A stretch of 64,000 nucleotides of DNA from positions 27,776,001-27,840,000 of the forward strand of contig NC_043003.1 of assembly GCF_006345805.1 (NCBI RefSeq), in the 5' to 3' direction. The position numbers were made by a program, and so were the translations under genes. The notes below the pieces were generated by a model. That model ran no database searches and was not told the origin of the DNA. It saw only the letters and a program-made list of their open reading frames with translations. Shown here in pieces: positions 44,265-63,030 of this stretch. The DNA is from Octopus sinensis. Lineage: Eukaryota. Within the stretch, counting starts at the first letter, position 1, and the number at the start of each line of letters is the position of its first letter.

Positions 44265-44585
44265 TTAGTCACGGAACAATATACTCAAACCGTCAGTCTT
44301 TGTTGTCATCTTGGGAACAAAATCACCTTTTTTTAGAGAAACCGGAATCTTGAAATTTTGTTGACTTTTTTCAACTTCTTTGTATGCATAAAGTCTCCTG
44401 TTGTCGGAGCTATAGCATTTCCCGTTTTTTTCGTAAACGTCAATAGGTGGGATGTTGGAGGGCGATTTCTTACCCGTTTTAATATCATCAATAAAATTTG
44501 ATATTGGTGTCCCGTCTTGAAAAGTGCGCTTAATATCATCTTGAGAAAAACGGATCTCACTTGGTTTCATTGTAGGGTGAGCCAT
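44265..44585 (-). CDS. 106-aa single-exon protein, ParB/sulfiredoxin-like (polymorphic-toxin-like) domain; paralog A
   Basis: Intact ORF with an in-frame TAA at -9 and agcATG context. Motifs IRFSQDDI..F and IDVYEKNGKCYSSDNRRLY. 48/101 aa identical, gapless, to 62716-63030. Confidence 0.8.
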   Translation of the reverse strand: MAHPTMKPSEIRFSQDDIKRTFQDGTPISNFIDDIKTGKKSPSNIPPIDVYEKNGKCYSSDNRRLYAYKEVEKSQQNFKIPVSLKKGDFVPKMTTKTDGLSILFRD

Positions 44586-47279
44586 GCTGGTTTACAAATA
44601 TCAACTTCGTATCCAATGAAGAAGTAATTGTTATGGGTAATAAGAATGAAAATCTTTTGGTCAGTATATAACTAGTGATTTCTCTATTTGACGGAGAAAA
44701 CAGTTTTAAAAATGTAGAATCAAATTTTATATTCACGTCAGTAGATAGCCGGTCCTTATTTTAACGAATCGGATTAATGGAATTCAAAGAAAGTTGACAG
44801 ACTTGTTTAATCTTGGACAATATCCGGAAGTATCGAAACGTGTTCGTATAGACAAGTGTTCTGTGGTGACTCGATTGTAGGCGAAGTTCAGTAAATATAT
44901 ATTGTAGTGGTGGAGGTGGTTGGTGCGTAGGACAGGTTCATTTCTCGGAAATAAATGTGAAACAGTTTTTCAAGGAAATTGAAATGGAAGTAAATATTTT
45001 GTATTTCCTAACTTATCAGGACGTATTCTGAGAAAGAATACTTAAAGATAACTTGGTATATGCGTTGGTGGGGGTGCATGGCTTCAAAATCTTTGATTCA
45101 TATATATATATATATATATAATATATATATATATATATATATATATATATATAAAGGTGTGGGGGAGAAGACGAATCTTCTACCCTACACCTTTTATTTA
45201 CTTCTTTATTTACGCCTACCTCTGTAACGGTCTTAGCTTGCCTTTGGTTTTAAATATAACTGACCAATTGTAGAGATGGCTGGACTTCGGTCAATTCTAT
45301 CATGGACAACTGGTGGTTGGTCTCTAGAATATTTCAATAAGTACACTATTATAAAAACTTTACGGGTTTATATTTGGATAAATATCAATTAGCTCTATTT
45401 ACGAAATCACAAGTACTATCCTTTTTCTAGACTTATTGGCGATTCCTGTTTTACTTTAGCACTTGTTTTATTTTACTATTATTTATACACCCTGGTACCC
45501 CTATAAAAAAAACATAACCCACAAATTATTTCTCTAGATTATTTGCTAGTTTACTCTTTTTCCCATCAACTTCAAGCTTCACACAGTAAAATGGTATGAT
45601 TCTAATATATTGAGCCTTCTTGCCTCATCTTGAGGTCCTATTTTTCCCTGTTCGCTTCTCTTATTTTATGTATTTGTATTCACTCTGATGAAGCTCTTCC
45701 ATGCACTAGATCGAATGTGCAATAAAGATGACGAATATTATTTTCGGAATTTTCTTTGTAGGCACCGACTGATATTGGTAGCCGAAACGGCCGTAAGCAA
45801 TGTTAAGTTTTGTATTAATTAACCGATGTTGTTCAATTTGTTTGTTTGTTGATCAAAAGTTTTCTCCATTTTCCGCTTATTTTAAGTTATATATACTAAC
45901 AGAGATACCCGGCCTTGCTCGGGATTAAAATGGCATAGATTTTTATTGTTTTACTTGTTTCAGTCATGTGACTGTGACCATGCTGGAGCACCGCCGTTAG
46001 TCGAAGAAATCAACCACAGGATTTATTCTCTGTTAGTGTCTTTTACCAAACCGCTAAGTTACGGGAATGTAAACACAGCAGCATCAGTTGTCAAGCAATG
46101 GTGGGGATATAAACACAAGACATGCACACACATACACATATATACGACAGTCTTCTTTCAGTTTTCGAGTACGAAACCCACTCACAAGATTTTAGTCGGC
46201 CTGAGGCTATAATAAGCATATATATATATATATATATATATATATATATATAATAAATAAATAAAATATATGCATATATACATACATATATGTACATACT
46301 TACATCTACATGTATATATACAAGCATATATATATATATATATGTGAGTACAGGACACCACAAATAAACGTAGAACACAACGAGAAACGAAAACAAAATC
46401 AAACAAGGAAACGGACTTTTTTTAACAACGAAAAAACAGAGCACAGGACAAACAATACAAGGAAAATTCCCCTTCATCAGCTGTCCCTGGTTCGGCTTAA
46501 TGCGTGTTTCGAAGGTAAGGACAGAACAGGGCCAGGCCGAAGCAGTCCTTCATGCAAAAGGAATTAAATAAAATTCTTTTGCAGAGGGGTAAAACAAGTG
46601 ACAAGAACAGGACGTAAAAGCAATACAAATGAAGAAAAGACAGTAGAAAAAACAGTACAAATAAGGAATAACAGGACAGGGAACCAACAAAAAGGGCATT
46701 TTTTTAGGCCTAGACGGTGGAAAAATTAGTTAGAAAGCATGTGAAAAATCGGCTTGCGGAAGACAGGGAAGTCGGTCTATGCTTGTGGAAGGCACGGAGC
46801 TGAAAGAAAGTTTTTAGTAGCGCTCTGGTCAACGAACCAGAGAGGAGGAGGAGAGAGAGAGAGAGGGGGGGAAAGAAACCAGAAAGGGTGAAAAATAAGA
46901 AGGAGAGAGACAAGTAGAGAGGAAGACAGACAGGCTGGGAGGAAAGGTGAAGTAAAGAGTAAGAGTGCGAGTCATGATTATTCAAATAAAAACTTACTTG
47001 GAAAAGCGAAACGAAGAGAAACGACGCGTGCGTTAGTTCATATAATAACAATATAATAAATAAAATAAATAAATAAGATATATGCATATATACATACATA
47101 TATCTACATACTTACATCTACATGTATATATACAAGCATATATATATATAAATGTGAGTACAGGACACACACCATACACACACACACACACACACACACA
47201 CACACACACACACACACACACACACACATAATATATATATATATATATATATATATATATATATATATATATATATGTA

Positions 47280-48112
47280 GTAGCTGACATACCCGGTAAT
47301 TCCCGGTAAGCGGGCTTATCCCTTGGTTCCGTTCTCATAAGTGTTTCGCTAATCCAGTAACAACAATACAAAGTATGTAGCCCTTAAAACGGTTTTTGTG
47401 TATTTATTGAGAATACCGAACTGTCTTACAAAGGATCTTGTTTTTAGGAATTACCAATAAGTTATGAATACCCAAATTGTGAAGTCAGTTATGTAATAAC
47501 ATGAAATTAACTACTCCGTAGTAAGAATTCATATATAATAGCCCCGAAAAGGGCTTTAATACGTTCCCAGAGTATATACATTTTAGGGGAAATACAAATC
47601 GTGAAATATGTTACGTAATAACAGGCTAATCAGATATGAAATAATAACAATTCAAAGTAATTAACTGTGAAAAAAGCTTTTGTGCGTTCCCAGCAAATAT
47701 TACCCTCAGCAGCGCTAATGTTGGTATATTCGTGAATAAGTCACGAACCGAAATATGTGGATCTATTTATTTGTTTAAGCGTTGTATTGGATAAATTGCG
47801 AAAATAACTAAAATAGTTCAAATACTAAGAAATAAGCATGTTGAAAATGAATGAGTTATTTCCAAGAGGGAATGGGTTGTTTCCCTTGGAGGCTTAAAAT
47901 TTTTACTCTCACCGTTCACTCACGCCCAAATGTTATTCCTCCCGCCGTTTACCCAAACATATTTTCGAAATCAATTTATACTTAAAACCTCCCCAGACAC
48001 ATAAGCAATGTGCATGTGAAGTTTAAGAAAGATCGGTTGGGCCGTTTTGGCGCAAAACTAGGACATACCGATACACACACACACACAGATATTTTCAGTT
48101 TTAATATGTAAG
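47280..48112 (-). mobile_element. Helitron-like non-autonomous element, degenerate
   Basis: A|TCTTACATATTAAAA start on the minus strand and a degenerate cccgg hairpin at the other end. Similar 5' ends at about 48170 and 52268 (plus). Confidence 0.45.
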
Positions 48113-62160: not shown

Positions 62161-62715
62161 TATATATATAATTTATATATACAATATATGTCTCCGTCAA
62201 GTTATCTTTAATTATTCTTTCCCAGAATGTGTCTTTATTAGTTAGGAAATACAAAACATTTACTTTCATTTTAATTTCTAAGAAAATAATACGATATTGT
62301 CATATCATTTTCATTGAAAAACTTTTTATTTTCACTTTCATTTCCAAGAAAGAAACCCCTCCTACCCAGCAACCTCCACTACAATATATATTTACCGAAC
62401 TCCACCTACAATCGATTAGACAGGATCGAGTCGCCACGAAACACTAGTCTATACGACACATTTCAATCCCTCCAGATATTATTCAAGATTAAACAAGTCT
62501 GTCAACTTTCTCTGCATTTCATTTATTGGATTCGATAAGATAAAGAGCGTCTATCTACTGAAGTAAATATAAATTTTGATTCTACGTTTCTACAATTGTG
62601 TTTTCTCTGTGAATCTTAGAAATCACTAATTATATATTAACCAAAACACTTTCATTTTTATTACCCACAACATCAACTTCTTTATTAGATACGAAGTCGA
62701 TATTTATAAACCAAC

Positions 62716-63030
62716 ATGAAGCGCATGAATCCAAGAGATATCCGTTATACTCAGGATACAATCAAGCCTGAATTCCAAAACAGGAGATCATTAGATGATG
62801 TTATTAATGACATTAAACGTGGTAAAATTTCGCCTGACGATATAGAAGTTATGGACGTTTACCAAAGAGATGGAAAATACTATAGTGCCGGCAACAGGAG
62901 ACTTTATGTATTCAAACGAGTACAAGTAAGTAAACCATATTTGGAGGTTCCAGTTAATCTAAAACCAGATAGTTTTATTCCCAACTTCACAACAAAGAAT
63001 GATGGTTTGAGTGTAACAATCCGTGGCTAA
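62716..63030 (+). CDS. 104-aa single-exon protein, ParB/sulfiredoxin-like (polymorphic-toxin-like) domain; paralog B
   Basis: Intact ORF with an in-frame TAA at -9 and aacATG context. Motifs IRYTQDTI..F and MDVYQRDGKYYSAGNRRLY. Gapless alignment to paralog A. Confidence 0.8.
   Translation: MKRMNPRDIRYTQDTIKPEFQNRRSLDDVINDIKRGKISPDDIEVMDVYQRDGKYYSAGNRRLYVFKRVQVSKPYLEVPVNLKPDSFIPNFTTKNDGLSVTIRG

Follow-up and report, generated by a model that had tools for sequence, protein, structure and literature searches.

We analysed a 64,000-nt stretch of Octopus sinensis DNA (assembly GCF_006345805.1, contig NC_043003.1, positions 27,776,001 to 27,840,000; hereafter the window), which contains two small paralogous open reading frames (ORFs), A and B, encoding standalone ParB-like domain proteins (Table 1). 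These proteins likely represent an octopod-specific subfamily of an animal family that is derived from a C-terminal domain of bacterial polymorphic toxins and that would act on nucleoside triphosphates (NTPs) and play a role in intracellular conflict. The source family is most likely Tox-ParBL1 of Zhang et al. (2012).

The coordinates and strands of both ORFs agreed with those of a first-pass annotation of the window. A and B aligned by BLASTP without gaps, with 48 identities among 100 residues (69 % positives, E 9e-34), the annotation having counted the same 48 identities over 101 aa. The three shared motifs that it had listed were all present, namely one in which IRFSQDDIKRTFQ matches IRYTQDTIKPEFQ, I.DIK.GK.SP..I..DVY...GK.YS.[DG]NRRLY, and TTK.DGLS, as was the in-frame TAA at −9 upstream of each ORF. 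The two genes are divergently oriented (head-to-head), also as described, with a distance of 18.1 kb from ATG to ATG. Each ORF contains one complete domain of approximately 100 residues and nothing besides, and neither carrier repeats nor an adjacent immunity gene were found with A or B. By eye, no hydrophobic leader was detected at the N-termini (MAHPTMKPSE in A and MKRMNPRD in B), both of which are hydrophilic, in agreement with the reported lack of a signal peptide. The description of A and B as the only clean ORFs was fair, as the other ORFs of at least 90 aa in the window were microsatellite read-throughs or fragments of long interspersed nuclear element (LINE) endonuclease/reverse transcriptase (RT), CCHC and transposase helix-turn-helix (HTH) type.

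An exhaustive phmmer search recovered at least 1365 clusters of homologues at E≤1e-3. A and B matched the C-terminal toxin domains of bacterial RHS and CdiA/filamentous-haemagglutinin proteins with E values of 1e-11 to 1e-16, which bears out the likeness to polymorphic toxins proposed earlier. Among 259 family domains, the N, R and R columns were conserved at 99, 99 and 98 %, respectively (98–100 % for all of N/R/R/L), Q at 96 % and G99 at 100 %. Of the 25 most conserved columns, 21 have the family consensus in A and 17 in B, and the core (the R..Q, G, N-R-R-L, T-T..G and R positions) was intact in both. In the N-terminal box, for which the family consensus is IRF[TS]QDSI, A has S14 and B has T at both Ser/Thr positions.

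The structure of the domain was modelled with AlphaFold2 from a 40-sequence alignment (predicted local distance difference test score 92.7, predicted template modelling score 0.85). The model contains strands at residues 48–53 and 56–59, followed by a helix at 62–74 that opens at D61-N62-R63-R64. All of the top 50 PDB structures found by Foldseek were ParB/Noc/KorB N-terminal NTPase domains, sulfiredoxin (Srx), SbnI/SerK (free serine kinase) or Atu1540. In an hhalign comparison of the family profile with human Srx, the sequence of which was checked against PDB 1yzs, IPPIDVYEKNG..KCYSSDN-RRLYAYKEV was paired with VPPIDVLWIKG..YFYSFGGCHRYAAYQQL, SSDN-RR being placed on SFGGCHR. R63-R64 was thus aligned to H100-R101 of Srx, the phosphate-binding His-Arg equivalent to the G-x-x-R P-motif of ParB. 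These comparisons support the earlier identification, and the A/B domain is predicted to adopt the ParB/Srx nucleotide-binding fold.

In bacteria, the domain forms the extreme C-terminus of RHS, CdiA/haemagglutinin, PT-TG and PT-HINT polymorphic toxins, one carrier, of 2137 aa, having DUF637 together with haemagglutinin repeats (Fil_haemagg). The Pfam domains of the carriers included the RHS core (PF03527 and PF25023), PF04830, PF13332, pre-toxin HINT (PF07591) and pre-toxin TG (PF14449), and the source names included 'RHS repeat-associated core domain-containing protein' and 'filamentous hemagglutinin'. Using a 12-sequence bacterial alignment, we identified 58 loci (L003–L060) from many phyla, in which the domain terminates long ORFs. 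Directly downstream in 48 of the 58 loci was an ORF of approximately 85 aa encoding DUF7660 (PF24693), its start lying only a few bases from the toxin stop codon and often overlapping it by 1–4 nt; in a Pfam scan of ten downstream ORFs, eight were DUF7660 (E 1e-23 to 1e-33), and the conserved core at these loci was WEN..L..FLEA..W...Y.E. Since a toxin-domain ORF directly followed by a small ORF is the canonical toxin–immunity layout, DUF7660 is likely to be the immunity protein of this toxin domain, a role that the pairing would give to a domain of unknown function. Bacillota loci lacking DUF7660 carried another conserved downstream protein of approximately 130 aa (112–142 aa), which had no Pfam match and the consensus ...PYQA.KVTT.DC...RHILE.ENSEW...SRHFILPL...; this protein is a candidate second immunity family for the same toxin domain. 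No SUKH or Imm44 match was seen among the ORFs downstream of the bacterial domain, and no DUF7660-like ORF was found in the 123 kb of octopod DNA examined. The literature searched contained no mention of DUF7660 and no reported activity for the bacterial relatives.

Tox-ParBL1, with NGK_2271 of Neisseria gonorrhoeae as the type, was defined by Zhang et al. (2012; Biol Direct 7:18, PMC3482391) as having a predicted ParB fold, a conserved N-terminal [ST] and an [NT][RT][RT] motif, mostly R-R, that corresponds to the arginine of the ParB DGHHR motif. The carriers were RHS, filamentous-haemagglutinin, HINT, MafBN, WXG and LXG toxins, and the immunity partners listed were Imm-SUKH and Imm44 (PMC3482391). 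Members were found in several eukaryotic groups including metazoans, their acquisition from polymorphic toxins was held to be separate from that of Srx, and an early absorption into eukaryotic core functions was proposed (PMC3482391). The octopus family resembles Tox-ParBL1 in its predicted ParB fold and in D-N-R-R-L (98–100 %) as against [NT][RT][RT]; the Ser/Thr of IRF[ST]QDSI may correspond to the conserved [ST], for which the paper specifies no column. Both occupy the C-terminus of RHS, filamentous-haemagglutinin and HINT toxins, occur in Actinobacteria, Proteobacteria and Firmicutes, and have standalone eukaryotic copies, including metazoan ones. As the metazoan members, with the same motif signature and carriers, were reported in 2012 (PMC3482391), A and B would be further members of a known family, and the presence of a ParB-like toxin domain in animals is not new. 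The present analysis adds three things: how large the animal family is, the pairing with DUF7660, and a coding sequence (CDS) that, unusually, evolves faster than its flanks. Within the literature searched, the name ParBL1 was used for a toxin family only by Zhang et al. (2012).

Several points weigh against these assignments. The Foldseek probability reached 1.00 with TM scores of approximately 0.5, but the best E value, 8.5e-3, was modest; likewise, the hhalign match to Srx had an E value of 7.8e-5 but a low probability of 61 %. No match was found for A or B in Pfam (including PF02195) or NCBIfam even at E≤10, nor for PF02195 on the ten relatives scanned; of the profile or structural support that the annotation had called for, the library profiles were therefore blank, and the links came from Foldseek and hhalign. 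Searches of the PDB by sequence, with a single sequence or with the 40-sequence profile, gave only noise, scans of A and B with PADLOC and PHROGs gave nothing usable, and a word-indexed search with ORF B alone gave no candidates. NTP binding or hydrolysis by the family is predicted from fold and motif. A carries D at column 15 of the IRFTQDSI box, where 87 % of the family has S, and either A, through this substitution, or B, through its three near-invariant departures, could be catalytically impaired. The immunity partners found here, DUF7660 and the Bacillota protein, were not the Imm-SUKH and Imm44 of the published Tox-ParBL1 list, which may be incomplete. Because of this mismatch, and because the assignment was made by match to the published description and not by alignment with NGK_2271 (no Neisseria was recovered by the bacterial genome scan), membership of A and B in Tox-ParBL1 is probable but not proven. 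Finally, the exact A and B proteins had no record in the public gene collections searched, exact-sequence look-ups of P0001 and P0105 likewise gave no record, and no conserved poly(A) signal was found.

The best mechanistic precedent for the domain is ToxB, a ParB-CTPase-fold ATPase toxin of CdiA proteins and the sole experimentally characterised ParB-fold toxin (Kaljevic et al., bioRxiv 10.64898/2026.05.05.722872). ToxB binds and slowly hydrolyses ATP via G-N-H-R, both activities being lost in R108A; its ATP-binding pocket is reported to be essential for toxicity and is blocked by the immunity protein, and ToxB is rare (52 of 68,709 species). In both systems, a contact-dependent inhibition toxin ends in a domain of ParB/Srx fold (predicted for the present family), and a small protein encoded downstream confers immunity (in the present family, most likely DUF7660). 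The P-motifs, G-N-H-R for ToxB and D-N-R-R for the octopus family, occupy equivalent places in the structure. In contrast to ToxB, which is detectable with PF02195, rare and paired with another immunity protein, the octopus family is invisible to PF02195 and far more widespread, and the octopus domain may at most work in a way similar to ToxB but is not a member of it. Animal homologues of ToxB are not mentioned in the excerpts consulted. Because ToxB is reported to kill through ATP binding and hydrolysis, one biochemical study could assign a function on both the bacterial and the animal side, and could show what animals do with a toxin deprived of its immunity partner.

Apart from the present family, Srx is the one ParB-fold protein that animals commonly have. 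It shares with the octopus domain a length of approximately 100 residues and the strand–strand–helix core (PPIDV...Y.S..x.R.aAy), with Foldseek TM scores of 0.45–0.54. However, the catalytic Cys of FGGCHR is absent from the octopus family, the hhalign alignment having a gap beside N62, and no Cys is conserved in the family. In addition, Srx is a single-copy, conserved enzyme, whereas the octopus family is multi-copy and fast-evolving and has no Pfam ParBc match.

By analogy, the protein would bind an NTP, and the invariant D-N-R-R loop, from which the main helix sets out, would grip the phosphates in the manner of the G-x-x-R P-motif of ParB, Srx and ToxB. R12, Q15, T94-T95 and G99 would complete the pocket, and the NTP would then be hydrolysed, or a phosphate or nucleotide transferred onto a cellular target. 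In the bacterial version, this activity would poison the recipient cell unless blocked by the cognate small protein, usually DUF7660. The octopus version would act inside the cell in a setting where sequence turnover pays, for instance in resisting intracellular parasites or in genomic conflict. Exchange among paralogues together with diversifying selection would probably drive the divergence of the CDS to approximately twice that of the surrounding DNA, while the frame and the core are kept.

The last part of this proposal comes from a comparison of A and B within and around the coding region, in which identities were counted over aligned, ungapped columns. The CDS was identical at 223 of 315 positions (70.8 %), compared with 388 of 463 in the upstream block (83.8 %), 106 of 122 in the proximal downstream block (86.9 %) and 282 of 346 in the distal downstream block (81.5 %). 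The CDS was less conserved than every non-coding block (Fisher p 1.8e-5 for upstream, 3.3e-4 for proximal and 0.0013 for distal). Substitutions were evenly spread over codon positions (35/28/29), and the Nei–Gojobori method gave a nonsynonymous divergence (dN) of 0.39, a synonymous divergence (dS) of 0.43 and a ratio (omega) of 0.92, with 0.74 for family-conserved codons and 0.89 for the remaining codons. The dS of 0.43 is approximately twice the divergence of the flanks (Jukes–Cantor K 0.14–0.21). Positive selection alone leaves this excess unexplained: selection on amino acids would not raise dS, and we therefore read the history of A and B as mosaic. Either the flanks have been homogenised or the coding cassette has been swapped with more distant paralogues, possibly with diversifying selection in addition. 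The best protein match of the window ORFs, O. bimaculoides A0A0L8HIU1 (P0001; 68 %), supports such a history in looking mosaic itself, with B-like residues 5–24 (MNPRDIRY.QDTIK..FQN) and an A-like C-terminal half (EVEKSQ.NFKIPVSLK.GDFVPK), a combination that suggests gene conversion among paralogues. The same trend was seen in an independent array of four O. sinensis copies, in which the CDS differed more than the flanks (21 of 404 versus 19 of 1511 positions, p 9e-6); most of the excess lay in the C-terminal tail, the domain-coding part alone having 10 differences in 322 positions (p 0.024).

The main rival explanation takes A and B for relics of a family once functional in octopods, recently inactivated or without function, which drift neutrally and have not yet acquired a stop codon. 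An omega near 0.9, and of 0.74 in the core codons, is also expected from relaxed constraint, and the loss of three near-invariant residues by B, the S-to-D change in the IRFTQDSI box of A, the missing annotation of both ORFs and the missing poly(A) signal all fit this explanation, as does the frame disruption, in that assembly, of three of the four copies of the O. sinensis array. We nevertheless rate its chance as rather low. In neutral walks of 97 substitutions with the spectrum of the flanks, the frame stayed free of stop codons in only approximately 5 % of trials. At the indel rate of the flanks, 4.85 indels were expected in the CDS, and one was seen, an in-frame event of 6 nt (P(≤1) approximately 0.046, range 0.02–0.05); the joint probability of both outcomes under drift is approximately 1e-3. 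Moreover, columns identical between A and B were enriched at positions conserved in the rest of the family (Mann–Whitney p 0.023), both proteins retain the N-R-R-L, Q, T-T and G core, and drift leaves a CDS that is more diverged than the adjoining non-coding DNA unexplained. These results indicate that selection maintains the reading frames and core of A and B, even though substitutions overall have accumulated at a nearly neutral rate.

On the animal side, a profile search yielded 940 clusters at E≤1e-8, and every named match was 'uncharacterized' or 'hypothetical', which makes the family one of the larger blocks of wholly uncharacterised mollusc and tunicate genes. The sources were octopods (O. 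bimaculoides, O. sinensis, O. vulgaris and Argonauta), a chiton, approximately 18 genera of bivalves and three of tunicates (Ciona, Styela and Clavelina); consecutive locus tags suggested gene clusters in several bivalves. Together with the octopod best match of the window ORFs, the dozens of interspersed repeats that the window shares with an O. sinensis chromosome (85–94 %) argue against bacterial contamination, as had been concluded before. A Logan contig was considered as evidence for transcription and set aside, as it could be genomic.

The O. sinensis array (L001, CM016883.1:20759171-20797989) contains four tandem copies at 447, 10001, 19201 and 28412, with a period of approximately 9.2 kb; in this assembly only the second copy is intact. 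A RefSeq-type gene model for P0010 covers 18.8 kb over three of these copies, and its translation is not colinear; this model is probably chimeric. In Argonauta hians (L002, BAAFZT010000014.1, 10001-10621), the homologue is a single-exon gene of 207 aa in an RNF220 intron, on the opposite strand. No synteny was found between the window and this locus, only repeats and the gene itself being in common. Some octopod and bivalve paralogues (P0010, P0029, P0050, P0118; L001 10318-10408) bear acidic C-terminal tails, absent from A and B, with repeated D/S-rich motifs that contain aromatic residues, the last residues being FFL or FFY in some cases (e.g. MDFDDSSTDSDDFFL), and may represent short linear interaction motifs.

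The origin of the family was analysed with an unrooted maximum-likelihood (ML) tree of 70 domains (LG+C20, 107 columns). All 22 named bacterial domains formed a single clade (support 99/99; 100 % of bootstrap trees) with no animal sequence inside, A, B and two O. bimaculoides proteins formed an octopod clade (98/98), and most cephalopod sequences lay between the bacterial branch and a group of bivalves, chiton and tunicates (95/95). A FastTree of 262 domains agreed with the ML tree. The tunicate sequences (Ciona, Styela, Clavelina) formed a single clade (94/92) nested among bivalves and not outside the molluscs; poor resolution, ancient paralogy with loss and transfer between animals are all possible causes. 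Because the bacterial domains are monophyletic and the family is spread widely over molluscs and tunicates, there is no sign of a recent transfer into cephalopods in particular from a sampled bacterial lineage. The tree is most simply read as showing one old transfer, or a few, with later expansion in individual lineages; the horizontal acquisition suggested earlier is thus plausible as an old event, but not as an acquisition by cephalopods.

Another possibility is that the animal proteins have lost enzymatic activity and serve as non-catalytic nucleotide- or protein-binding modules in an ordinary housekeeping role. The ParB fold has non-toxic uses (DNA clamps, Srx and SerK), animal copies without an immunity gene are more easily tolerated if the protein is harmless, and Zhang et al. 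(2012; PMC3482391) propose that ParBL1 was recruited early to core functions of eukaryotes. Yet lineage-specific, multi-copy, pseudogene-rich arrays with an omega of approximately 0.9 and close paralogues only 45–68 % identical would be unusual for such a role, and N-R-R and the polar core are almost invariant across animals, suggesting that catalysis or nucleotide binding is retained. We therefore regard this possibility as very unlikely.

With regard to the function of the octopus proteins, the tandem or inverted arrays of the family, its frequent pseudogenes, the omega of approximately 0.9 and the fast CDS lead us to infer that they function in conflict, for example in defence. Among the earlier suggestions, a role in venom or as a secreted antimicrobial is unlikely, since A, B and their closest relatives lack a signal peptide. 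The dae amidases of ticks and mites are animal genes domesticated from bacterial interbacterial toxins. The teneurin C-terminal domain likewise comes from a bacterial polymorphic toxin (PMC6425310, PMC6510184). Both are bacterial toxin domains fixed in animals without delivery machinery or an immunity gene, as in the octopus family, but they have defined roles and evolve more slowly, whereas the octopus family is hugely expanded, apparently intracellular and, in our survey, confined to molluscs and tunicates. A broader version of our proposal, which we consider unlikely as a whole, is that molluscs and tunicates possess a large and rapidly diversifying arsenal of intracellular, NTP-dependent ParB-fold effectors of innate immunity or genome conflict, which stem from a bacterial contact-dependent toxin, operate without an immunity protein and exchange coding cassettes between homogeneous regulatory flanks. 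If so, the cassette-exchanging arrays would be a eukaryotic echo of cassette swapping in bacterial polymorphic toxins.

The duplicated unit that includes A and B is at least 1.3 kb long, 45055..43760 around A being homologous to 62198..63800 around B, and its homology downstream of the CDS is broken by an insertion in B. Toxin-derived genes are common cargo of selfish elements. The chance that this unit of 1.3–1.4 kb belongs to a mobile element, as a part of it or as a passenger, and that its ORF benefits the element (an addiction factor or an anti-host factor would be examples) is nonetheless very slight: the unit and its flanks are duplicated in inverted orientation 18 kb apart, in a region that consists almost wholly of LINEs, repeats resembling short interspersed nuclear elements (SINEs), a Tc1/mariner-like fragment and microsatellites, and the Argonauta homologue stands alone in the RNF220 intron on the opposite strand, but the unit has no terminal inverted repeats, long terminal repeats or target-site duplications around it (the sole inverted repeats being (TA)n microsatellites), no transposase, integrase or RT inside it and no further copies or fragments in the window, the O. 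sinensis copies lie in a regular 9.2-kb tandem array and are not dispersed, and the copies in O. sinensis and Argonauta are not surrounded by the flanks of A and B.

Table 1. Positions of the A/B units, their boundaries and related elements. Coordinates refer to the window unless a locus is named.
Feature	Position	Strand	Remarks
ORF A	44265..44585	minus	106 aa, stop codon included; standalone ParB-like (Tox-ParBL1-type) domain protein
ORF B	62716..63030	plus	104-aa paralogue of A and the more derived copy, with near-invariant columns changed (G25R, I48M, D61G)
Upstream block, copy A	44586..45055	minus	candidate promoter/5' untranslated region
Upstream block, copy B	62198..62715	plus	homologous to the block upstream of A
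Downstream DNA, copy A	43760..44264	minus	proximal 122 nt and distal block
Proximal downstream block, copy B	63031..63155	plus	conserved with copy A
Insertion in copy B relative to A, 281 bp	63156..63436	plus	elsewhere in the window only a 55-nt partial match, 42792-42844
Distal downstream block, copy B	63437..63800	plus	conserved with copy A
(TA)n microsatellite	45096..45155		just beyond the 5' boundary of unit A
(TA)n-rich microsatellite	43682..43753		3' boundary of unit A
(TA)n microsatellite	63803..64000		3' boundary of unit B, reaching the end of the window
Conserved 40-nt element, copy A	44967..45006	minus	core ATTTACTTYCAYTTYAATTTC; 382-421 nt 5' of the ATG of A
Conserved 40-nt element, copy B	62247..62286	plus	430-469 nt 5' of the ATG of B
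40-nt element, O. sinensis array	L001: 9551-9590, 18748-18787, 27961-28000		upstream of paralogues
DUF7660 ORFs (examples)	L005:3312-3572, L003:3378-3635		bacterial loci
Bacillota partner ORFs	L014:3406-3792, L016:3275-3700, L023:2092-2427, L024:3316-3711, L034:430-810, L060:3291-3668		candidate second immunity family

The one exception among the flanks is a conserved element of 40 nt, which was also found 411–453 nt upstream of three O. sinensis paralogues with 7–8 substitutions per 40 nt; the proteins encoded downstream of it are only approximately 45–50 % identical to one another. A reading of the upstream element, which carries GAAA repeats on the other strand, as an interferon regulatory factor/interferon-stimulated response element was dropped for want of enrichment, as the strict motif GAAANNGAAA occurred once upstream of A, once upstream of B and not at the O. 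sinensis copies.

An Rfam scan of the window gave no match. Approximately 1.15 kb upstream of unit B, outside the duplicated unit, a 120-aa ORF at 60683-61045 (+) has HTH domains of the Tc1/mariner type (Sleeping-Beauty-like/paired-box) and represents a transposase fragment. Between A and B, a repeat with a long spurious ORF occurs at 48618-49665 and 55179-55627; parts of it recur many times at the Argonauta locus, and it is probably an octopod SINE-like repeat. The window also contains a nearly complete LINE-type retrotransposon, with a 729-aa endonuclease and RT ORF, a zf-RVT ORF and a CCHC ORF1-like ORF, beside at least two degraded LINE copies (LINE regions 32930-38009 (−), 14800-18800 and 25831-26818 (−)). 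At 20054-21817 lies a tandem array of 51 copies of a 35-bp unit, AACACAAACTATACCTACATAACCAGGAGAACACA, with 93 % matches and an extreme strand asymmetry (GC skew −0.49, AT skew +0.55).

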